The position numbers were made by a program, and so were the translations under genes. A stretch of 63,698 nucleotides of DNA, the filler included, from Octopus bimaculoides (Eukaryota), in NCBI RefSeq assembly GCF_001194135.2. It is 6 parts of 5 records of this genome, joined end to end, with 100 filler letters (N's around TTAATTAATTAA, not from the genome) between each part and the next. Parts side by side here need not be neighbours in the genome. Positions count along the whole stretch, not along the records: positions 21,552 to 38,491 come from NC_068993.1; 5 more parts are not named here. One strand, written 5' to 3'. The notes below the pieces were generated by a model. It did not search any database. It was given only the letters and a program-made list of their open reading frames with translations, and was not told the DNA's origin. Below are positions 24,847 through 38,688 of this stretch, one piece after another. Position 1 is the stretch's first letter, and every line of letters starts with the position of its first letter.

Positions 24847-25996
24847 GTGGTTATGTATTTTCCGAAGTATAGTACAGATGTATAGCCGGAATATGTGCTG
24901 TTTNNNNNNNNNNNNNNNNNNNNNNNNNNNNNNNNNNNNNNNNNNNNNNNNNNNNNNNNNNNNNNNNNNNNNNNNNNNNNNNNNNNNNNNNNNNNNNNNN
25001 NNNNNNNNNNNNNNNNNNNNNNNNNNNNNNNNNNNNNNNNNNNNNNNNNNNNNNNNNNNNNNNNNNNNNNNNNNNNNNNNNNNNNNNNNNNNNNNNNNNN
25101 NNNNNNNNNNNNNNNNNNNNNNNNNNNNNNNNNNNNNNNNNNNNNNNNNNNNNNNNNNNNNNNNNNNNNNNNNNNNNNNNNNNNNNNNNNNNNNNNNNNN
25201 NNNNNNNNNNNNNNNNNNNNNNNNNNNNNNNNNNNNNNNNNNNNNNNNNNNNNNNNNNNNNNNNNNNNNNNNNNNNNNNNNNNNNNNNNNNNNNNNNNNN
25301 NNNNNNNNNNNNNNNNNNNNNNNNNNNNNNNNNNNNNNNNNNNNNNNNNNNNNNNNNNNNNNNNNNNNNNNNNNNNNNNNNNNNNNNNNNNNNNNNNNNN
25401 NNNNNNNNNNNNNNNNNNNNNNNNNNNNNNNNNNNNNNNNNNNNNNNNNNNNNNNNNNNNNNNNNNNNNNNNNNNNNNNNNNNNNNNNNNNNNNNNNNNN
25501 NNNNNNNNNNNNNNNNNNNNNNNNNNNNNNNNNNNNNNNNNNNNNNNNNNNNNNNNNNNNNNNNNNNNNNNNNNNNNNNNNNNNNNNNNNNNNNNNNNNN
25601 NNNNNNNNNNNNNNNNNNNNNNNNNNNNNNNNNNNNNNNNNNNNNNNNNNNNNNNNNNNNNNNNNNNNNNNNNNNNNNNNNNNNNNNNNNNNNNNNNNNN
25701 NNNNNNNNNNNNNNNNNNNNNNNNNNNNNNNNNNNNNNNNNNNNNNNNNNNNNNNNNNNNNNNNNNNNNNNNNNNNNNNNNNNNNNNNNNNNNNNNNNNN
25801 NNNNNNNNNNNNNNNNNNNNNNNNTATATATATATATATATATATATATTATCCAATTCCATCAGTAAAGAAACAATGTCTGAATCTCGCATTACATTTA
25901 TTGGGATATTTCCCTTACTGCATAGAACAGAAACTAAATTGTTGAATGAAATGAAAATCAAATATACAACACGAGAAAACATAAAGTAATGAAATA

Positions 25997-26002
25997 TTTA
26001 TT
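25997..26002 (-). terminator. Candidate polyadenylation signal of the four-exon gene
   Basis: AATAAA on the minus strand about 150 nt after the stop, followed by GT/T-rich sequence. It is conserved in the homologous segment at 38289-38458. Alternative AATAAA sites lie at 26058-26063 and 26083-26088. Confidence 0.45.
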
Positions 26003-26153
26003 AAAGACAAATTGGTTTCCAAAACCTCTCATGCATTATTCCCAAAATTTATATCGTTTTATTTTTTTATATATTTCTATATTTTATTATTATTCTATTA
26101 TCTGTATAAAACCGTATACAGACTAACAAAACTACTATCTTTCAATTCGCTCA

Positions 26154-26494
26154 TTACTTCTCGGCGTCTTTGGACCAAGTGAGAGAATCTGCGTTTTCGT
26201 TTCTTTCGCCAATGTATTCCAGTCTCTTAGCCGTGTCAGCTTGAAATACTTGTGCCCCAAAAGAAACTTTATCATTTATATTCCAATCTTCTATACTGTC
26301 CGGAGGGCTAATTTCGTTGGAATGAAAATATTTGTGGATACAACCGAGATTAGTTGAGAGATGAAAAAACAAAACCTTGTAGGTTATACGGAAGCACGCT
26401 TTAAATTCCTGGGTACTTAAAGTCTCCACATTCAATGTAAATGAAATTGAAGCAACTCCCAAATGGAATTCAAAAGTTTTAGTAAATGTTCCTC
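26154..26494 (-). CDS. Exon 4 (terminal) of secreted Cys-containing protein, paralog 2: (R)GTFTKTFEFHLGVASISFTLNVETLSTQEFKACFRITYKVLFFHLSTNLGCIHKYF...SKDAEK*
   Basis: Strong acceptor CTCTTTTCATATTTCCAG, phase 1, and open for 112 codons to TAA. Joins exon 3 in frame. Confidence 0.78.
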
Positions 26495-26631
26495 CTGGAA
26501 ATATGAAAAGAGTAATAACAGACAAATTATTATATATAATGCATGTGTGTGTGTGTGTGTGTGTATTTATATATATGTATATATATATGTATATATATGT
26601 GTGTATGTGTGTATTTTTATCTATGTATATA

Positions 26632-26667
<36 letters not shown>

Positions 26668-26729
26668 AAAGTAAAAGGAAAACAAAACCAGGGCAGGACA
26701 GCCTTAGATCATTCTAAATATATATATAT

Positions 26730-26764
<35 letters not shown>

Positions 26765-26767
<3 letters not shown>

Positions 26768-27179
26768 TCTTTACACTTTACTCTTTTGTTTCAGTCTTTT
26801 GACTGTGGCCATGCTGGAGCACCACCTTTAGTCGAGCAAATCGACCCCGGGACTTATTCTTTGTAAGCCTAGTACTTATTCTATCGGTCTCTTTTGCTGA
26901 ACCGCTAAGTTACAGGGACATAAACACACCAGCATCGGTTGTCAAGCGATGTTGGGGCGGACAAACACAGACATACAAACACATACACACATACATATAT
27001 AATATATACATATATACGACAGGCTTCTTTCAGTTTCCGTCTACCAAATCCACTCACAAGGCTTTGGTCGGCCCGAGGCTATAATAGAAGACACTTGCCC
27101 AAGGTGCCACGCAGTGGGACTGAACCCGGGACCATGTAGTTGGTAAGCAAGCTACTTACCACACAGCCACTCCTACGCC
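26765..27179 (-). mobile_element. Full-length SINE family B in intron 3
   Basis: Complete tRNA-like head, internal microsatellite and AAGAGTA tail. Confidence 0.92.
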
Positions 27180-27206
27180 TATATATATATATATATATAT
27201 ATTTGA

Positions 27207-27251
<45 letters not shown>

Positions 27252-27866
27252 CAGATAGATAGATAGATAGATACACATACATACCAGGTAGCTTACTGGG
27301 TAAAACACGGTCACTTTCGTAGTGATCATTAGGTATATGGCAAATGAAATACAGAATATGGAATATACGAGAATTTATTATTAAGCATGGTAATTGTTTC
27401 GATGCGTCTACCATCGATTCCTCATTGGTGGGACACTCAACAACTGGTTCGGGAGCATCCGGTGGTGCAGATGTATCTCGTCGGGTGATTAATAAATATA
27501 ACTCGTTAAAATGACTATTTCGCAATGTAACTTTCCTTTTTTTTACAAAGAAAAGCACCCAGACGGAGGAAATATTTTCATTTATATAGAAAATCAAAAC
27601 TAAAATCATAGATGGCAATCCCGAATCCATTTATAAAGCAGTCTAGAATTCATTTACCAACGTTGTTACCGTGTCCGCTGTATCATAAGCATTTCTACAA
27701 TACAGTTCAGTTGTAGTCGTACTCATACAGTGATTCATCAAAGGACATTTTGATTTTTCTCTGCATGAACATCTATCGTATTTATTTGTATATAAGGCAG
27801 TCCCGACTCCATTTACCGGCGTTGTTGCCGTGTTAGCTGTATCATAAGTATTTCTAGTATTACAGT

Positions 27867-28248
27867 GGAGGCGCAATGGCCCAGTGGTTAAGGCAGCGGA
27901 CTCGCGGTCATAGGAATCGCGGTTTCGATTCCCAGACCGGGCGTTGTGAGTGTTTATTGAGCGAAAAACACCTAAATTCCACGAGGCTCCGGCAGGGGAT
28001 GGTGGTGAACCCTGCTGTACTCTTTCACCACAACTTTCTCTCACTCTTACTTCCTCTTTCTGTTGTGCCTGTAATTCAAAGGGTCAGCCTTGTCACACAG
28101 TGTCACGCTGAATATCCCCGAGGACAACGTTAAGGGTACACGTGTCTGTGGAGTGCTCAGCCACTTGCACGTTAATTTCACGAGCAGGCTGTTCCGGTGA
28201 TTGGATCAACTGGAACCCTCGACGTCGTAAGCGACGGAGTGCCAACAA
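27867..28248 (+). mobile_element. Full-length tRNA-derived SINE family D (head resembles tRNA-Arg) in intron 3
   Basis: A-box TGGCCCAGTGGTTAAGG, B-box GGTTTCGATTCCC, and tail GTAAGCGACGGAGTGCCAACAA. Confidence 0.9.
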
Positions 28249-28444
28249 TGCAACTAGTGCTACATATTGATCGTAATTGATGTTTATCATTGCAGTTGGT
28301 GGTGGTGGTGGTGGTGGTGCCGTCGAGAAGAATGCCTCGAAACGGCGCAATTTCTCTCCTGATAATGCCATAAACTTGCTAGCATCTTGTATAAGGAGCA
28401 TTCAACTAGTAGCACTTGCATCTCGCAGAAAAATTCGCAAAAAA

Positions 28445-28755
28445 TTTACGACGACAGGGGTTCCAGATTGTCCGATAAACAGAACATCCTGGTCGTGAAA
28501 TTAACGTGCATATGTCTGAGCACTCCACAAACATGCATAGCCTTGACGTAGTTCTCAGGGAGGTTTAGTGAGACACAGAATGTGACAAGGCTGGCCCCTT
28601 GAATTACAGGTACTACTCATTTTTGCCAGCTGAGTGGACTGGAACAACACTGAAATAAAGTGACTTGCTCAAGAATACAACGTGCCACCAGAAATTGAAC
28701 TTATGACTTTATGATCGTGAGTCGAATACTCTAACCATTAAGCCACGCATCTTCA
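28445..28755 (-). mobile_element. Chimeric SINE: family-A head with family-D tail (older copy)
   Basis: Same architecture as 8578-8860. Confidence 0.7.
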
Positions 28756-28775
28756 CATGCAAAATAAAAGATCTA

Positions 28776-28833
<58 letters not shown>

Positions 28834-28867
28834 TATATTATATGTGTTAATAATACAAGATACTCAC

Positions 28868-28951
28868 GGAAAGTTTTACGCAGAATCACATGACCACCAA
28901 TTGTTAATGAGAACTGCAACTCTCTGTTTGAAATTTCCATTCGAATGCATA
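28868..28951 (-). CDS. Exon 3 of secreted protein, paralog 2: (L)CIRMEISNRELQFSLTIGGHVILRKTF(R)
   Basis: Acceptor TATTTTACTTTTTCAG and donor GTGAGT. 84 nt, phase 1-1, open frame, compatible with exons 2 and 4. Confidence 0.75.
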
Positions 28952-29449
28952 CTGAAAAAGTAAAATAATTATTCTCTTTATATCTTTTTTCCTTTATCGA
29001 GATAAATATTATTAATATCGTTTCACTTCTCAGAGACATTGATTTCAGCTGCTGCGGCTAATTTTTTAAAGAGCAGACGACAACCTTTTGTCAGTATTTC
29101 TTTTTACGATACCTATCATTCAAGTACAAATCTAAAGATCCACGCTGTCCCCAATAATGCAGTTTTCTGAACATGTTCTACATTCCTCTTGTCAATCCTC
29201 TTTCTGCAACAAATTGCTCAAATTGATAATACTCCCGATGCTTCTGCAACAACTGGGATGACAGTTACTCTGTTCATGGCCCACATTCGTGCAATTTCAT
29301 ATTTTAGTGCTGTTACCGTACAGTACTTATTAGTATATGATGAAATCTCTCAGTTTATTTTACTTGCTATGATGAAATGTGTCAGCTGTTCACAGCCAGA
29401 AGATTAAGGTGACACTTACTTGCTGGTCATTCTTCAGGAACCCTAAGCA

Positions 29450-30680
29450 ATGCAAATTTTTGTAGGTATTCTGTCCTTACATTTATACTAATCTTTTTGA
29501 GTCATGTTGGTTTTTGAGTGCTGATGCATCCAAGTGCGCCATTTACTATTAGTATCTCGTCTCCTCTCCTCATTGACCACAACCGTCGTATTTTCCACTT
29601 TAAATCGTAATAGTTGCTCAGTTTTTCTTCTTTAACTTTGATTTTGTTTTCACCAGGACATGCATATCCTTTCTTTTTTATTCACCACAACAATGTCCGG
29701 TTTCCGATGTCCGGCCAAGTGATCACACAGAAGAATTGCATCCCACAGGGTTTTGCATCTTCATTCTCATTGACTTCTGCTGAGGGTTTTCTTTGTTGTT
29801 TGTAGGCCGCGATTTCCACAGAGCTCCCAATGGAGTGTCATTGCCACATTGTCATGTTGTCTTTTGTATTAGCCTTGTACCAATTTCAGGCATTCGTTAA
29901 TGATGTGCCATACCGTTTCTCCCCACTCGCCACACATTCTGAATTTTCTGTTGTCGGTAGTGTGGTTGATTATGCACTTCACATAGTTAGTCCTTAACGC
30001 TTGTTCTTGTGCTGCGCACGTAACTGATCTTGCATCTATCATCCGTAGATCACCTCATCCATAGACGCAGAACTTCTGTATCTGTCTTGGCGTTCGTATC
30101 TCTTGCAAACTGACAGTACATTTTTCTCCTTCCATACTGTTACTTTTTTAATGCTCTTATCTTTAAATCTTTTTTTCTCTACACAATTATCAGTTTCAAT
30201 GACGCCGGCTTTCTTCACATGTTTCAACAATGGTTCCACAATATATTTTACATACTACCCTAAGCTGTTTTCCTCTTCTTCAACGTTATCCTCGCAACTG
30301 ATTAAACCTTCTCCACCCTTTCTTCTGGACAACTACAGCCTATCGGTGCCACTCTTAGGGTGGAAGGCTCTGTGCACTGCCAACATTTTTCTAGTCTTCG
30401 TATCCATTTTCATCAGGAATCATCATATGATTTCAGTTCCATACCGAAGTGATGTTATCGCCCATGTATTAATGCTTGAATGTTATTCCATCCGATCAAT
30501 TTTGAGCGCAACACTAATCTAAGTCTTCGGAAATATTCCATCCTTAGTTGCCGTCTCCTTTCTTTCTCCATTGTCACATTGAAGTCTGGTATTCCAAGAT
30601 ATTCGTAGCCTTCTGTTTCAGTTTCTTTAATCCGTTCTCTATTAGGGGATTCTATCCCTGCTAGGGACTGTAGCTGCCTC
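29450..30680 (-). pseudogene. R4/Dong-like retrotransposon fragment (RT C-terminus, zinc knuckle, RLE) in intron 2
   Basis: YEYLGI, AFHPKSGTDRL..SRKKGGEGLISCED, AAQEQALRTNY, CGEWGETVWHIINEC, HDNVA..LHW.LC, LWD and RKPDIVVV, with frameshifts. Confidence 0.85.
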
Positions 30681-30749
30681 TTTCAAAGTACATTATTCCA
30701 CACTTCTTGAGTTTTGCTATTATCATTGTTTTTGTTGTTGTTGTTGTTT

Positions 30750-30985
30750 AGGCGGCGAACTGGCAAAGACGGCGAGCTGGCAGAATCGTCAGGGCGCCGG
30801 GCGAAATGCTTAGCAGTATTTCCTCTGCCGCTGCGTTCAGAGTTCAAATTCCGCCGAGGTTGACTTTGCATTTCATCGCTTCTGGATCGATAAATTGACT
30901 ACCAGTGAAATACTGGGGTCAATGTAATCCACTCATCCCCTCCCCAAAAAAGCTGTCCTTGTGGCAAAATTTGAAACCATTATTA
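30750..30985 (+). mobile_element. SINE local family C
   Basis: GGCGAGCTGGCAGAATCG..GAGTTCAAATTCCGCCGAGG..GGCAAAATTTGAAACCATT. Confidence 0.82.
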
Positions 30986-32356
30986 TTATAGATGTTGCTG
31001 TTGTTGTTATTATCATCATTACTCTTGATCGCATTCTGATAATTGTTCGAAGCGGGCGAAAGCTTCCACGAAAGGCGCCGGATCCGTCGCGAAAGCGAAA
31101 AAATCTAGTTTTCGTTCGTACTTTCGTTTTTATGACTCGTCTGTAGCTTTACGTCATATGGTCGGAGTAATGACAAATAAAATACCAGGGGACGTAAGTT
31201 ACAGATTATGTTCTAGAGTTACCAAACTTGAATACAAAAAACGAAAAGATAAAATAAAAAGAATAATGTTTTTTCTTAACAGCATGCAGAGGCTTATTTT
31301 CTCTTTCAGCATTTATAACAACTACTTCAGCAAACCTCTATCTTCAGATTGGTCCAGCTCTGAACTGACCCACTAAAATATCGGTNNNNNNNNNNNNNNN
31401 NNNNNNNNNNNNNNNNNNNNNNNNNNNNNNNNNNNNNNNNNNNNNNNNNNNNNNNNNNNNNNNNNNNNNNNNNNNNNNNNNNNNNNNNNNNNNNNNNNNN
31501 NNNNNNNNNNNNNNNNNNNNNNNNNNTATATACGCCTGTGCCGCGTAGCCAACTAGAAACGTCACTTCTTCGGGTTAAATATCAGTAACATTCTACCCTT
31601 TCCTGGGTAATTGATCAATAACCACAACATAATGAATTCAAAACTTCGTATTGAACTTCCACTCTGTACGATAACACTATATAAACATCTCACTCTACTT
31701 GACTTCCAGCAATTAACAATTTTAATTTGAAGTTGAATGGTTAGCAGTAAGAAAGATGTCCAGATTTCTCATAAAATTACTATGCAAAATCTTTTCAGAA
31801 AAAGTTGTTTTTTTTCACAACAAAATACACACACACACACAGAGGTGTGTTTATGATGACTTCAGCTACTACAAATCGCAGCCAAATCACTCTTAAATCA
31901 CACTCTTTCATCAAAAGAAAGACACAAATTTACAGTATTTCAGGTAGAAAGAAATAACTATGCGATGCGTCTGCTACAGCAGAGGTAACTCTGGTCTAAA
32001 CAAAACACAGACAAACATACTTCACATTAAAAGATTATCCACTAAATAATACTAATAAAGTTGACAGTATATCTTCGAAGTTTCATTCCCTGGTAAAACT
32101 TTTTAAACATGTATTTTAAGCATTTATTTTAAACTTGTATTCTGAGCATTTTCTCATTATGGTCTGTCTAATGCATAAATATCGTTCAGCCTCTCTTAGC
32201 TAAAGACCTTAAAATAGTGGGACCCGAGCTTGTTTTTTGTAGTAAAAAAGTGTTTGGCAAAAAACGTACTTTATTTGGTAGCCGAAAGATTACTGAATCT
32301 TTTGATACCTTATACGTCAAAATCGGCAACTCTGTCTTCGAATCCATAAGGAACAT

Positions 32357-32414
<58 letters not shown>

Positions 32415-33104
32415 ACGCACGCACGCACGCACGCACATGCACACATCCAAACTCTGTTTTATATATTAATATATATATATATGTGTGTGTGTATATATAA
32501 AGAGAGAGACAGTGAGAGAGTGAGACAGACAGACAGACAGACAGACAGGCAGACGGATAGACACAAAGAAAGAGAGAGAGATCTATATATATTTTGAATG
32601 ATTACAAAAATTAACGTGAGCTACTTGAACCTGAAACTGAAAAAAGTGGCGTATCACTGCACGCTTTGCCATACAGTCCATCCTATTATTGCACTATCTG
32701 CACATGAAGCTCACGTTTGACTCCACTATTAATTACGCAGGCTACAATTAAATCAAGGTCGGAGTTGAACTCAGAACGCAAAAGGATGGAACATATAACA
32801 TTAAGTATCTGCTGTGACATATACTTTCTGTTCCTTCAATAGACCGCCGTGGATGGCTTATACTTTATCAACCACGAAAGGTTCGAAAGGCAAATTTGAA
32901 CTCAGAACTCAGACTTGGAAAACAAATATCACGAGGCATTACATCCCGACGCAATTTGCCGTGAAATTTTAATCATTCTGTCTTTTAAGTCTTACGTTAC
33001 CAAACAGTCATACTTTATCGTTCGAACTGACGATCTTTTCCACACACTAAACTTAGTTATTTCAAATAAATTGAAAGAAGGGCAAATGAACAAACAATAC
33101 TTAC

Positions 33105-33317
33105 ATTTAGGGAGTCTAAACAGACCGGCACAGCAATTCCCTATATTCTGATTCCAAGAACACCTCAGATGTTCAAGATTTCGCAACTCACTATTTTCAG
33201 CAACTTCAGTGACCAGTATTTCATTCTGAGGTTCGATATCATTATTCTTCAGCATTCGTTCAAACTGAAACTTTTCTATAAGTTTCTCTAAAAGAACTCT
33301 TTCATAAGTACTAGTAT
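33105..33317 (-). CDS. Exon 2 of secreted protein, paralog 2: (D)TSTYERVLLEKLIEKFQFERMLKNNDIEPQNEILVTEVAENSELRNLEHLRCSWNQNIGNCCAGLFRLPK(L)
   Basis: Acceptor TTTGTATTACATTTACAG and donor GTAAGT. 213 nt, phase 1-1, no stops. Encodes an acidic pro-region and the first three Cys. Confidence 0.78.
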
Positions 33318-33435
33318 CTGTAAATGTAATACAAAAAAGAGAATAACTATTCAAATATGGCGATATATCATGCAACGGAGGCATGGGTATTGTGATAGTC
33401 ACATACATTTGTATATGTTTGGCATTAGTGACGTG

Positions 33436-33488
<53 letters not shown>

Positions 33489-33785
33489 CTGTATATATAT
33501 ATATATACAATCGTATATATGTATATATATATACATATATATACATATACATATAAATATATNNNNNNNNNNNNNNNNNNNNNNNNNNNNNNNNNNNNNN
33601 NNNNNNNNNNNNNNNNNNNNNNNNNNNNNNNNNNNNNNNNNNNNNNNNNNNNNNNNNATATATATATATATATATATATATATAAGTATATATTATACAT
33701 ATGTGTGTGTGTGTACAGATGGATGGATGGATGGATGGATGGACGGACGGACGTGTATACTGTATAGAAATGGATTACCACTTAC

Positions 33786-33876
33786 CTTTACTTATCTTTG
33801 GATCCAACTTTATGACAGCACCATTAGCCAGACATACCATTACAGCTAAACAGAAGATTACCTTAATCGCAACCAT
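33786..33876 (-). CDS. Exon 1 (signal peptide) of secreted protein, paralog 2: MVAIKVIFCLAVMVCLANGAVIKLDPKISK(D)
   Basis: AAAACAATG start, hydrophobic core, A-N-G-A cleavage-like motif and phase-1 GTAAGT donor. Paralogous to 21797-21887. Confidence 0.82.
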
Positions 33877-33993
33877 TGTTTTTCTTTTCGCTTCGTCTTC
33901 TCAAAATTCGACACACAATTGCTCGCTAATGAGACAGAAGTTCGACAGTTACAGATGATAGACGACTGTGTAACAAGAATACGATCGGTTCTA

Positions 33994-34001
33994 TATTTAT
34001 A
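33994..34001 (-). promoter_or_regulatory. TATA box (TATAAATA) of paralog 2
   Basis: Consensus TATA about 120 nt upstream of the ATG, inside the region conserved with paralog 1. Confidence 0.55.
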
Positions 34002-34535
34002 GCGATTAATGTGATCCGTGTACAGTTTAGATTAAGGATACGATATTGAAAACAAATATAAGATCAAAAGAGCAGGATGAACGCTTATTTTAAGTTGGCT
34101 GATATAGACTACTTAAGCAATTACATCATTAAATCACACTTCAGCCGCTTAGAACAAAAAAGTCATTTGTCTAAGAGCTCACTTTTCTTAGAAATCACTT
34201 AATATGTTGTTTATTTTCAAACATTATTTCATGCTATTTTTTGCATGAATATTAGTTATCTCTAAATGTATCATGTTTGTAACAATGAATCCATTGTTCT
34301 TTGAAGCCTCAAGTTTAATAAGCCTCTTAATTAACAATTAGCCAGAGACTATAAAATTCTAAAGAAATTCGAAGTATGAAGTGCTTTGAGCGGTAATCAA
34401 TCATTGCTATTGAAATACACTAACATTCGCACGCACACACAGACACACACACTGACACATATACACACACATACACATACGCATACACACATACATACGT
34501 GCACACGCACATACACGCAGGCATGTATACATTTA

Positions 34536-34722
34536 TACGAGGGTTTTTGATGAAATGCTTGGATGGAGGCGTAACCTTCCGAGTTTTTTAAATGGCATAG
34601 AAAAACTGAAGGACCACCGAGATAAGAGTGTGAATTTGAAAGAGGAATATGTAGAATAAAATCATAATTTACTGATCCACCTGTATTTTGTTTTACTTAA
34701 ATCCAGGTACACCCTACTCGTG
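34536..34722 (+). mobile_element. Short mariner-derived non-autonomous element (MITE-like)
   Basis: Starts TA-CGAGGG and carries the mariner C-terminus GIEKLKDHRDKSVNLKEEYVE*. The right end is degenerate (..CCCTACTCG). Confidence 0.65.
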
Positions 34723-34728
34723 TATATA

Positions 34729-34986
34729 TTAGGTTGGTGCATAATTATAACGGCTTATTTTTGTTTCAATAAATTTTATTCAACAACAACAATAACAAAA
34801 TGTAAACAAAACCAGCTTTAAATAATTATTCCGGAGCATATTCACCATCTACTTCAATTACTGCTTCCCATTTGCTTGGCAGACGGTCAGACTGTCATTT
34901 AAAGATGTTTTTTGTTAAATATCGTTATTGTTTTCCTTGAATAAAATTTATTGAATAAAAGCCGCAATAATTATGCAACAACCTCA
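34729..34986 (-). mobile_element. Mariner (Mos1/Hsmar-like TIR) MITE, about 258 bp
   Basis: TIRs TTAGGTTGGTGCATAATTAT..CGGCTT and AAGCCGCAATAATTATGCAACAACCTCA. Antisense DRLPSKWEAVIEVDGEYAPE* is a transposase C-terminus. Confidence 0.8.
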
Positions 34987-36079
34987 TNNNNNNNNNNNNN
35001 NNNNNNNNNNNNNNNNNNNNNNNNNNNNNNNNNNNNNNNNNNNNNNNNNNNNNNNNNNNNNNNNNNNNNNNNNNNNNNNNNNNNNNNNNNNNNNNNNNNN
35101 NNNNNNNNNNNNNNNNNNNNNNNNNNNNNNNNNNNNNNNNNNNNNNNNNNNNNNNNNNNNNNNNNNNNNNNNNNNNNNNNNNNNNNNNNNNNNNNNNNNN
35201 NNNNNNNNNNNNNNNNNNNNNNNNNNNNNNNNNNNNNNNNNNNNNNNNNNNNNNNNNNNNNNNNNNNNNNNNNNNNNNNNNNNNNNNNNNNNNNNNNNNN
35301 NNNNNNNNNNNNNNNNNNNNNNNNNNNNNNNNNNNNNNNNNNNNNNNNNNNNNNNNNNNNNNNNNNNNNNNNNNNNNNNNNNNNNNNNNNNNNNNNNNNN
35401 NNNNNNNNNNNNNNNNNNNNNNNNNNNNNNNNNNNNNNNNNNNNNNNNNNNNNNNNNNNNNNNNNNNNNNNNNNNNNNNNNNNNNNNNNNNNNNNNNNNN
35501 NNNNNNNNNNNNNNNNNNNNNNNNNNNNNNNNNNNNNNNNNNNNNNNNNNNNNNNNNNNNNNNNNNNNNNNNNNNNNNNNNNNNNNNNNNNNNNNNNNNN
35601 NNNNNNNNNNNNNNNNNNNNNNNNNNNNNNNNNNNNNNNNNNNNNNNNNNNNNNNNNNNNNNNNNNNNNNNNNNNNNNNNNNNNNNNNNNNNNNNNNNNN
35701 NNNNNNNNNNNNNNNNNNNNNNNNNNNNNNNNNNNNNNNNNNNNNNNNNNNNNNNNNNNNNNNNNNNNNNNNNNNNNNNNNNNNNNNNNNNNNNNNNNNN
35801 NNNNNNNNNNNNNNNNNNNNNNNNNNNNNNNNNNNNNNNNNNNNNNNNNNNNNNNNNNNNNNNNNNNNNNNNNNNNNNNNNNNNNNNNNNNNNNNNNNNN
35901 NNNNNNNNNNNNNNNNNNNNNNNNNNNNNNNNNNNNNNNNNNNNNNNNNNNNNNNNNNNNNNNNATATATATATATATATATATATATATACACTAGTGT
36001 GAACACGCTATCTTTAAGATACCGTATTTTACATTGTATCATATATTTGGGCAGTTTATATACACAAGTATACATATAG

Positions 36080-36300
36080 AATGCAGTAATTAAGAATGGA
36101 ACAGAAAAGTCTTCGCATCTAATATGGAGTAGCTGAAATATCTGCAACTTCCATTGTCCAATCGCATTCACGGTCATCATGTGCTAAATCCAGTTTCATT
36201 GCAGCCTCTTTGTAACTATGTCAAACTACACCATTAATAGTCCTCATATCTTCAAATGATGTAGCTCCGGGAATATGATATAGTAAAGCTCTCAGAATTG
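36080..36300 (-). pseudogene. Helitron Rep/helicase fragment
   Basis: ILRALLYHIPGATSFEDMRTINGVV*HSYKEAAMKLDLAHDDRECDWTMEVADISATPY*MRRLFCSILNYC matches the conserved L..V.GATSFEDLRTVNG....F.EAC..LGLL.DD.EW...L.EA....P.QLR.LF..IL..C segment of Helitron RepHel. Confidence 0.85.
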
Positions 36301-36420
36301 TGATGTATGCACGTGCTAAGATCCCTCATAACCTTTTCATTTTTACGAATCATTACAACATTTTTCTATTCTGTCTTCTACATAATCGAATTGATACGAT
36401 TATACAAAAAAAAATGTTAA

Positions 36421-36562
36421 TCCCCGTAACTTAACGGTTCGACAAAAGAGTCCGATAGAATAGGCACTAGGCTTACAAAGAATAAGTCCTGGGGTTGCTT
36501 TGCTCGACTAAAGGTGGTGCTCCAGCATGGCTGCACTCAAATAACTAAAACAAGTAAAAGAA
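36421..36562 (+). mobile_element. 3' half of SINE family B
   Basis: CCCCGTAACTTAACGGTTCG..CTCCAGCATGGCTGCA..CAAGTAAAAGAAT. Confidence 0.82.
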
Positions 36563-36774
36563 TATGCTTGTAAATGTATATAAGGCTATATATAGAGAGA
36601 AACAAACACTGTAAATATTCGGAAGTTCAATATTCGTGTATAAGTATAAATATATTTGTATATTTGCTGAACAGATTTACATGGAGTACACAAGATATAG
36701 AAGACTAAGGGGAGAGAGCGTGGTATTTTATGACCGGCAGCTGTTTCTAGGGGCTCGGAATTACGTAATAGATC

Positions 36775-37630
36775 CAGGATATGATTGACAACGATCCCTC
36801 CAAGTCAATCAGGTGCCTTGCCAGGTTCATGGGAGTATCTAAATTTTTTTATCCGGCAGGTAGTGTATCACGGTATTCGGCATTTCTCATAGAAGATGAG
36901 AAAAGGCCACTTTTTATTCCACGCCTTCAAAGACAAGAGGAAATACCGCGCTACGAAACTGTTGAACAAACTCAAGGATTCCCACCAACCGAACATGCTT
37001 GGGTTTTTCTCAGACAAGGAAAATTTCTGCCAGGATCAGATGGTGAACACACAGAACCACCGTTGACTTACCGTGTCCCCAAAACATGTACCGAGAGTGA
37101 TAAAAATCAAACATCCAGTCAACATCATGGTGTTTGGAGTGATCACTTGTGATGGCGACGTTATGTCTCTCATTCATCTTCCCACACGGTCTCACCATCA
37201 ACACGGATACTTACATCAACACGGATACTTACATCAAGTGCTTGGAGGAGGTTGTACTGCCCTGGGTCAAGTGGATGGCTGCTGGGAGACTTTATGTCTG
37301 GCAACAGGACTCTGCACCGTGCCACACAAGCAGAAGAATCCAGTCACAGTTTCTGTGACCACATCACCCCTAACATCTGACCACGTAACTACCCAGACTG
37401 TAACCCACTTGATTATTATGTGTGGGGCGCAGAAGACCAACAAAACTCTTTGTAGCACCAAAGATGAACTGAAGGCAAGGATTATGGCAGCATTCACCAA
37501 CTTAAACAAGGAGACCGTCCAGAAGAGTTGCAGGAGATTCCGGAGTCATCTGGAGACCGTGGATGAAGCCTATGGTGACTTCACTGAGCAAGTTTACTCT
37601 TTAGTGCTTCAAGATATTTTTATGTAACTT
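36775..37630 (+). pseudogene. Tc1/mariner transposase, DD37D (maT)-like, frameshifted
   Basis: FFSDKENFCQDQ..N.QNHR, KHPVNIMVFGVIT.DG, YIKCLEEVVLPW, WQQDSAPCHTS, W.P...DCNPLDYY.W and KDELKARIMAAF. Confidence 0.85.
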
Positions 37631-37737
37631 TGGTAAATATATCTGTTAAAATGCATAAACATGCAGAAACTAAGAATATGCAAAAGAAACTAATAAACTA
37701 TAGTAACTAATGAATTTATATACAAATATAAATATAT

Positions 37738-38185
37738 AGGGGTGAAAAACGTATTCGTACAGAACATAAATAACTGATAATTCTGATTCAATACTTCGTA
37801 GCATAACCATTATCTAGTTCCACTTCAACCAATCTCTTCTTGTAGCTCTTAATCAATGACTCGCATGTTTCTTTAGGAATTTTTTCCCATTCTTCTTGAC
37901 AAATTTTTTTCAAATCTGGAATGCACATTGGGGCTCTTGAATGAATTTTAACTTTCAAATAACGCCACAAATTCTCAATGGGGTTCAAGTCAGGTGACTG
38001 GCTTGGCCATTCTAATAATTTTATATTGTGATTGACAATCCATTTTTGGTAGACTTCGCCGTGTGCTTAGGGTCATTATCCTGTTATAAAACCATCTTTC
38101 CTCCAAACATGGCTACGCGAATTTCGTCCAAACAATTCAATTTTCGACTCGTCTGCCCAAAGAACATTAGGCATTTGATTACATT
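37738..38185 (-). pseudogene. Internally deleted Tc1 (DD34E) element
   Basis: VLWADESKIELFG..HVWRKDG is joined directly to QDNDPKHTAK..WPSQSPDLNPIENLW..RLVEV...GYATKY*. A TIR-like end lies near 37738. Confidence 0.85.
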
Positions 38186-38288
38186 AAACAACTCTATAAA
38201 CTTTTTAATAATTATATATTCCAGTTAATATACAAGAAATGTGAGTTTGTACTGACTCAAATAAAATTTTATTGTATTAAATATATTT

Positions 38289-38458
38289 TATCCAATTCCA
38301 TCAGAAAAGGAATAATGTCTTATGTCATAATAGTTGAGATATTTCCCTTGTATTACGGTACCCAAAATAAATTGTAAAATGAAATGAAAAGAAAATCAAA
38401 CGTACAACAAAACAAAACATACATCAATAAAATATTTATTGAGCAAAAAATGGTTTCT
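38289..38458 (-). repeat. Diverged duplicate of the 3' flank (25850-26020) of the four-exon gene
   Basis: Shared blocks TATCCAATTCCATCAG, AATGTCT, GATATTTCCCTT, TAAATTGT..AATGAAATGAAAA, AAATATTTATT and TGGTTTC, all in the same order. Confidence 0.75.
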
Positions 38459-38688
38459 CATATTCTTGTGATTTTATGGTCGATTTGTTACNNNNNNNNN
38501 NNNNNNNNNNNNNNNNNNNNNNNNNNNNNNNNNNNTTAATTAATTAANNNNNNNNNNNNNNNNNNNNNNNNNNNNNNNNNNNNNNNNNNNNACAGACAGA
38601 AAGAGCGAAACGGAAGACGACAGAAAGAATAAGGTACATAAACTATATATGAAGGGGGTTTCTTTTTAAGAATTTTGGCCTTAAATTA

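Follow-up and report, generated by a model that had tools for sequence, protein, structure and literature searches.

LOC106876301 of Octopus bimaculoides is a transcribed four-exon gene for a divergent, probably secreted, reduced-cysteine DUF4773 protein in an octopod tandem cluster

DUF4773 (Pfam PF15998) is a domain without an assigned biochemical function, and literature mentions of it were found in three reports only. In the locust, the transcript of a DUF4773 protein ranks with the most abundant ones of the highly secreting pleuropodia (PMC6966819); in the oyster, a DUF4773 protein marks a hemocyte cluster (PMC12064177); and in O. vulgaris, the octopus protein A0A0L8GLC6 was quantified in the skin mucus proteome, at lower levels in senescent animals (PMC11431876). 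Here, we describe a paralog of the last protein, the product of the gene LOC106876301 of Octopus bimaculoides. The gene lies on the minus strand of the window, by which we mean the whole stretch of DNA that was analysed (63,698 nucleotides, six joined parts, filler included; assembly GCF_001194135.2), in the part taken from NC_068993.1 (positions 21,552 to 38,491). We consider it very probable that LOC106876301 is an annotated, transcribed gene of an octopod tandem cluster that encodes a secreted, divergent DUF4773 protein, likely an extracellular binding protein.

At this locus the sequence of the window, with its N gaps, agrees at 100% identity with chromosome CM046613.1 of GCA_001194135.2 at ~8.255-8.269 Mb, and LOC106876301 occupies ~8.258-8.266 Mb of that chromosome. 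The encoded protein of 242 amino acids shows 100% identity to XP_014780285.1 ('uncharacterized protein LOC106876301 [Octopus bimaculoides]') and is present in UniProt as A0A0L8GKD9, 'DUF4773 domain-containing protein'. These entries represent the same gene without any difference, and the public record carries no function. Because both protein and locus are identical to NCBI and UniProt records, the gene and its family label were already public, and LOC106876301 is an ordinary gene with an existing annotation. Literature searches with the locus names, UniProt accessions, OCBIM gene identifiers and PF15998 gave no match.

The open reading frame (ORF) of 729 nucleotides, stop codon included, is formed by four joined minus-strand segments. 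The coding part of exon 1 (33876-33786, 91 nucleotides) covers codons 1 (Met1) to 30 together with the first base of codon 31 and specifies a putative signal peptide, with hydrophobic residues 6-17, followed by a conserved (E/D)PKIS stretch. Exon 2 (33317-33105, 213 nucleotides) encodes the acidic N-terminal region, residues 31-82, and then the opening part of the DUF4773 core, in which C83, C92 and C93 are located, while exon 3 (28951-28868, 84 nucleotides) contributes core strands including C103; both are symmetric 1-1 exons. The coding part of exon 4 (26494-26154, 341 nucleotides including the TAA stop) provides the remaining core with C163 and the LGC motif ending at C181, an acidic tail with the RLEY strand, and a C-terminal NSLxW-type motif. 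The three introns (33785-33318, 33104-28952 and 28867-26495) are all in phase 1, with the donors GTAAGT, GTAAGT and GTGAGT, respectively, and with a pyrimidine tract followed by CAG at every acceptor. The initial annotation had proposed this four-exon model exactly, since the translation of the ORF equals its 242-residue string as well as XP_014780285.1; a spliced gene was thus rebuilt without error from raw sequence alone. Its description of the gene as hidden from the ORF track was half true: exons 2, 3 and 4 fall within mechanical ORFs of 186, 68 and 123 amino acids.

The splicing pattern was confirmed with RNA contigs. A 977-nucleotide Logan RNA contig (L002) holds the complete, uninterrupted coding sequence and maps to 33959-33786, 33317-33105, 28951-28868 and 26494-25989, so that all three predicted junctions (33786/33317, 33105/28951 and 28868/26494) are contained in it. 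The first two are also present in contigs of the RNA runs X1, X3 and X4, which match 28867/8-28951, 33105-33317 and 33786-339xx at adjoining record positions; in the X1 contig, the exons are joined at record positions 558/559 and 771/772 without extra letters. Introns 1 and 2 are absent from the spliced contigs, and intron 3 is spliced out in L002. The assembly contains an N run in intron 1 (33563-33657, with a TA/CA microsatellite on its flanks) and another in intron 2 (31386-31526), neither of which touches coding sequence. Since the exons directly adjoin in the RNA contigs, the sequences on either side of each gap are correctly ordered and oriented, and the gaps therefore hide no exon of this isoform. 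Spliced RNA of LOC106876301 was found across many runs. All sampled words of exon 4 (26154-26494) were also seen in the metatranscriptomic run X6, which carries the label 'termite gut metagenome'; this likely reflects cross-sample contamination or index hopping.

The ends of the transcript agree with signals in the DNA. The 5' ends of the RNA contigs fall at 33959 (L002), 33955 and 33946, and a TATA-type box, TATAAATA, is located at 33999-33992 on the minus strand, 33-40 nucleotides upstream of most of them. The 5' untranslated region (UTR; 33959-33877, minus strand) is at least 83 nucleotides long and corresponds to positions 1-83 of L002. One X4 RNA contig extends at least 111 nucleotides upstream of 34050, beyond the TATA box, which suggests an upstream start, read-through from a neighbouring copy, or unspliced or genomic carry-over. 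Because of this contig, the start of transcription downstream of the TATA box is only probable. At the other end, the 3' UTR (26153-25989, minus strand) measures at least 165 nucleotides, as L002 maps down to 25989; an AATAAA at 26002-25997 lies 8 nucleotides ahead of the end of L002, and an earlier one at 26088-26083 is read through. Both the upstream TATA box and the downstream AATAAA reported previously could therefore be read in the sequence, in positions consistent with the contig ends. The gene is flanked by two long N gaps, 24904-25824 (921 letters) and 34988-35964 (977 letters), each bordered by a (TA)n microsatellite. A longer 3' UTR is possible because the former gap starts ~165 nucleotides past the mapped 3' end of the transcript.

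The relationship to DUF4773 was determined by profile methods. The 242-residue protein alone scored 18.7 bits against Pfam PF15998 (E-value 0.0025), with residues 83-183 aligned to profile positions 2-113 of 118, and a DUF4773 match of any score was obtained for only two of its five closest relatives. A profile was built from the five closest octopus sequences, and 17 relatives were retrieved with it among 1.8 billion representative proteins. Among them was P0015 of Patiria miniata, a protein with six DUF4773 domains (E 3.1e-17; own Pfam E 5.8e-157), together with P0019, P0020 and P0024, matched at 2e-11 to 1e-4, whose own Pfam scores of 33-37 bits are above the cut-off. When the octopus alignment was compared with the Pfam-positive domains by hhalign, a probability of 98.5% and an E-value of 3.3e-15 were obtained over 108 columns, that is, the whole domain. 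When the word-indexed homologue search was repeated with the alignment of 19 sequences, six proteins were obtained, and nothing was gained from them. As both the profile search and hhalign reach Pfam-positive domains over their full length, the homology to DUF4773 is secure. The resemblance noticed in the initial annotation, which stays below threshold for the protein alone, was in this way borne out (E 3e-17 in the profile search).

The protein has six cysteines in the core, at residues 83, 92, 93, 103, 163 and 181 as predicted, and they align to the canonical DUF4773 cysteines 1, 4, 5, 6, 9 and 10. The canonical cysteines 2 (W85 here), 3, 7 (in the NPxPxC motif; KTFEF here) and 8 are replaced, so that 6 of the 10 are kept. 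The alignment, with four cysteines lost in all, among them that of the NPxPxC motif, thus agrees with the earlier statement that the NPPxxC motif and two cysteine pairs are lacking. Cysteines 83, 92, 163 and 181 are invariant across the 19 aligned relatives; the terminal LGC is present, and its G180-C181 is invariant in 19 of 19 aligned sequences. Compared with the canonical domain, represented by the six repeats of Patiria miniata XP_038073404.1, the octopus protein can be aligned over the whole domain of ~115 residues. The two have in common C1, the CC pair, C6, C9, the terminal LGC, the alternating hydrophobic pattern of beta-strands, and a '(F/V)xAC(F/x)R' strand; they differ in that the octopus protein has a single domain with acidic flanks instead of tandem repeats. 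Judged by these alignments, it is a reduced-cysteine variant of the DUF4773 domain. The transcript-derived proteins P0019, P0020 and P0024 resemble the octopus family in their signal peptide, acidic region, 'CSW(R/N)...CC' start, LGC end and C-terminal aromatic motif. In contrast to the octopus proteins, they keep the C7-C8 pair and have a longer acidic low-complexity region and an Arg-rich core. In terms of sequence, they are an eight-cysteine intermediate that links the octopus family to Pfam-positive DUF4773 proteins.

The protein is composed of regions of different character. Residues 1-20 are hydrophobic (grand average of hydropathy 2.2) and then small (CLA/NGA), with a helix modelled by AlphaFold2 at residues 2-17; this putative N-terminal signal peptide would direct the 242-residue protein into the secretory pathway. 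Residues 21-82 are acidic (isoelectric point 5.1), residues 83-186, in which all six cysteines of the mature protein are located, are basic (9.4), and residues 187-242 are again acidic (4.4). The six remaining cysteines probably form three disulfides. In the AlphaFold2 model obtained with the 19-sequence alignment, residues 81-190 form nine antiparallel strands in a meander with a predicted local distance difference test score (pLDDT) of 79-91; the flanks are mostly below 50, except for a tail strand at 221-228 of ~72. The structure prediction that the initial annotation had called for thus yielded a confident beta-meander core. With five close sequences only, the model was poor (pLDDT 46.5). 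No match was detected among PDB sequences by profile search (best E 1.2). The generic up-and-down beta-sheet look-alikes that Foldseek listed from the PDB and from viral models (the FAIM N-terminal domain, avidins and fatty-acid-binding proteins) were rejected as evidence of function due to their non-significant scores. Conserved motifs are present in both flanks: (E/D)PKIS after the signal peptide, NDIEPQNEILV, RLEY, and the NSLxW type, an aromatic C-terminal motif that recurs even in distant members. These motifs, together with the strand modelled in the tail, suggest that the flanks are retained in the mature protein.

The rate of evolution was estimated with the O. sinensis orthologue. For exons 2-4, the non-synonymous rate (dN) was 0.118 and the synonymous rate (dS) 0.142, which gives a dN/dS of 0.83; in the N-terminal region the ratio was 1.07. 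The 72 substitutions in 212 codons include no stop and are accompanied by no insertion or deletion. O. vulgaris has an intact full-length orthologue (P0007). Since the reading frame, the splice sites and the cysteines are kept and the O. vulgaris orthologue is intact, we regard LOC106876301 as a functional, fast-evolving gene and not as a pseudogene.

Based on these data, the following course of events is proposed. Transcription from the TATA-type promoter, splicing of the four exons and a transcript end shortly after the AATAAA are the part of the scheme that is shown by the data. The putative signal peptide would then route the product to the secretory pathway. A central domain, ~105 residues in length (83-186), would be a divergent DUF4773 domain, predicted to adopt the nine-strand antiparallel beta-meander and presumably stabilized by three disulfides. 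It would lie between two regions that are conserved in the cephalopod family, one N-terminal, acidic and partly helical, the other an acidic tail. Most likely, by analogy, the protein would act outside the cell in epithelial or mucous secretions and would bind a ligand or a surface rather than catalyse a reaction. This role is suggested by the occurrence of the paralog in skin mucus and by the secretory and immune-cell settings in which DUF4773 proteins are found elsewhere. The paralog, A0A0L8GLC6 (OCBIM_22032142mg), belongs to the same family and has the same UniProt name, and its N-terminus, MMTSAVFYLALMFSLGTCAVVNIVPEISEGK, matches the signal peptide and the EPKIS-type stretch; it is, however, a different gene from LOC106876301, and only that paralog was quantified in mucus.

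Several results weigh against this interpretation. The protein alone does not reach the Pfam gathering cut-off for DUF4773 (18.7 against 27 bits), and its secretion is a prediction for this protein. In the case of the octopus family, the tissue evidence comes from A0A0L8GLC6 only, and the LOC106876301 protein did not appear in the supplements searched for skin-mucus proteins. Foldseek detected no significant match to the model, either in the PDB (best E 0.13, template modelling score at most 0.43) or among the viral models of BFVD (best E 3.5e-3, score at most 0.19); without a significant fold match, the predicted fold is uninformative on function. Finally, relaxed constraint would likewise give a dN/dS near 1.

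Instead of being a soluble mucosal factor, the protein could be a structural or matrix-associated secreted component, for example of the sucker lining, the egg coat or another extracellular matrix. The abundance of a DUF4773 protein in the secreting locust pleuropodia agrees with this, as does the existence of multi-domain DUF4773 proteins with 6 to ~20 repeats (P0015, P0018). LOC106876301 nevertheless encodes a single domain, no repeat, chitin-binding or other matrix domain was recognized in it by Pfam, and the octopus paralog occurs in soluble mucus. We therefore consider a matrix component unlikely, although it is the best of the alternatives to the extracellular binding protein proposed above.

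A signal peptide, acidic flanking regions, a cysteine core, tandem duplication and fast evolution are common in venom gene families. LOC106876301 has such traits, with a putative signal peptide, a dN/dS of 0.83 and acidic flanks around the cysteine-containing core, and it could on these grounds encode a venom or toxin product of the posterior salivary gland: a prepro-protein cut at R82 and at K219-R220, which would free a small disulfide-rich core. The initial annotation had raised the possibility of a prepro architecture typical of exocrine or toxin-type products, and neither the proposed cleavage sites nor a toxin role was supported. Its acidic pro-region ends in R82, and the residue at this place before the first cysteine varies among relatives (R, K, G, E, S, H or Y), which leaves no conserved cleavage site. 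The KR site in the tail, K219-R220, is not conserved beyond the closest relatives and is changed to NR or SS in close paralogs. The flanks, which would be discarded by such cleavage, carry the conserved motifs (EPKIS, NDIEPQNEILV, RLEY and NSLxW) and the strand at 221-228. No toxin family was matched by Pfam, by the search of PDB sequences or by Foldseek, no result pointed to a venom gland, and the sole proteomic sighting of the family, that of the paralog, is in skin mucus. A toxin role is thus very unlikely.

The least probable explanation, to which we give hardly any credence, is a decaying duplicate that is transcribed without constraint on its protein and is becoming a pseudogene: the dN/dS values and damaged-looking neighbours (P0011, which runs into an intron, and the O. 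sinensis orthologue, with an extra base in exon 1 and a GC donor; see below) would fit it, but they are opposed by a frame intact over 242 codons, consensus splice sites throughout, the lack of stops and indels despite 72 substitutions, core residues that are invariant across deep paralogs, spliced RNA in many runs and the full-length O. vulgaris orthologue P0007.

As a likely extracellular DUF4773 protein, the product of LOC106876301 belongs to a group whose named relatives come from O. bimaculoides, O. sinensis, O. vulgaris and Argonauta hians. The lineage-specific, derived subfamily postulated in the initial annotation is in keeping with this, since the named relatives are from Octopus and Argonauta and are arranged in tandem clusters. 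On the same O. bimaculoides chromosome, the P0011 gene (a 120-residue model) is located at 8.252-8.254 Mb on the minus strand, with its start at 8254091, which is position 21887 of the window, and the paralogs LOC106876293 and LOC106876288 are located at 8.280-8.285 Mb (minus strand) and 8.309-8.314 Mb (plus strand), respectively. The paralogs of the cluster have the four-exon layout with common boundaries at residues 31, 101 and 130. The same kind of paralog cluster is present in O. sinensis.

Exon 1 of the next downstream paralog was found within the window at 21887-21797 on the minus strand. It encodes MYGVNIIFYSAVMVCLGSGAVMKMEPKMAE, which matches the N-terminus of P0011, and is followed by a GTAAGT donor; its promoter-like region reaches ~21970, and the remainder of this gene is outside the piece. 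The DNA of its 5' region and exon 1 is 77% identical to the 5' UTR and exon 1 of LOC106876301. The 120-residue model of P0011 reads into the intron after exon 2, and P0011 therefore looks like a truncated model or a damaged copy.

In O. sinensis, exon 1 of the orthologue (L007 47955-48047, CM016871.1) contains one extra C (GAACCCAAAG versus GATCCAAAG), which puts a stop in frame; the donor of this exon reads GC rather than GT. The NCBI model of isoform X1 of LOC115218502 from this species combines exons 1-2 of an upstream paralog with exons 3-4 of the orthologue, ~40 kb apart, and the frame is kept because all exons are in phase 1. This model could represent a real chimeric transcript, an assembly error in the C run, or an artefact of gene modelling. 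The O. vulgaris protein CAI9731751.1 is encoded with its own, intact exon 1.

Repeats were noted in and around the gene. An interspersed repeat of ~310-335 bp was found in three copies, 94-96% identical, at 22581-22920, 24517-24849 and 27933-28249; one of the copies is in the opposite orientation, and one, of ~310 bp, lies in intron 3, which also contains microsatellites. ARAGORN predicted no transfer RNA in the three copies. Degenerate repeats are present in intron 2. Stop-riddled or short ORFs at 29000-30700 (in intron 2), 23525-24118 and 36781-37988 resemble relics of retrotransposons and of Tc1/mariner-type transposases; by eye, the ...NPIENLW... string at 37788-37988 is an example of the resemblance to transposases. 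Pfam gave no match for the five transposon-like ORFs that were scanned (30039-30239, 23525-24118 and three within 36781-37988).

Beyond the single gene, we tentatively suggest, while holding it to be doubtful, that octopods expanded the reduced-cysteine branch of DUF4773 by tandem duplication into a fast-evolving family of mucus or exocrine proteins for surface defence or recognition, with splicing between copies. Because every internal exon is of the 1-1 phase, exons of neighbouring copies could be spliced in frame, and the model of isoform X1 in O. sinensis suggests such splicing; if true, it would add combinatorial diversity. As an octopod-specific, tandem, fast-evolving branch of putatively secreted proteins with one member in skin mucus, the family may offer a reasonable entry, albeit a modest lead, to DUF4773 and to the surface secretions of cephalopods.

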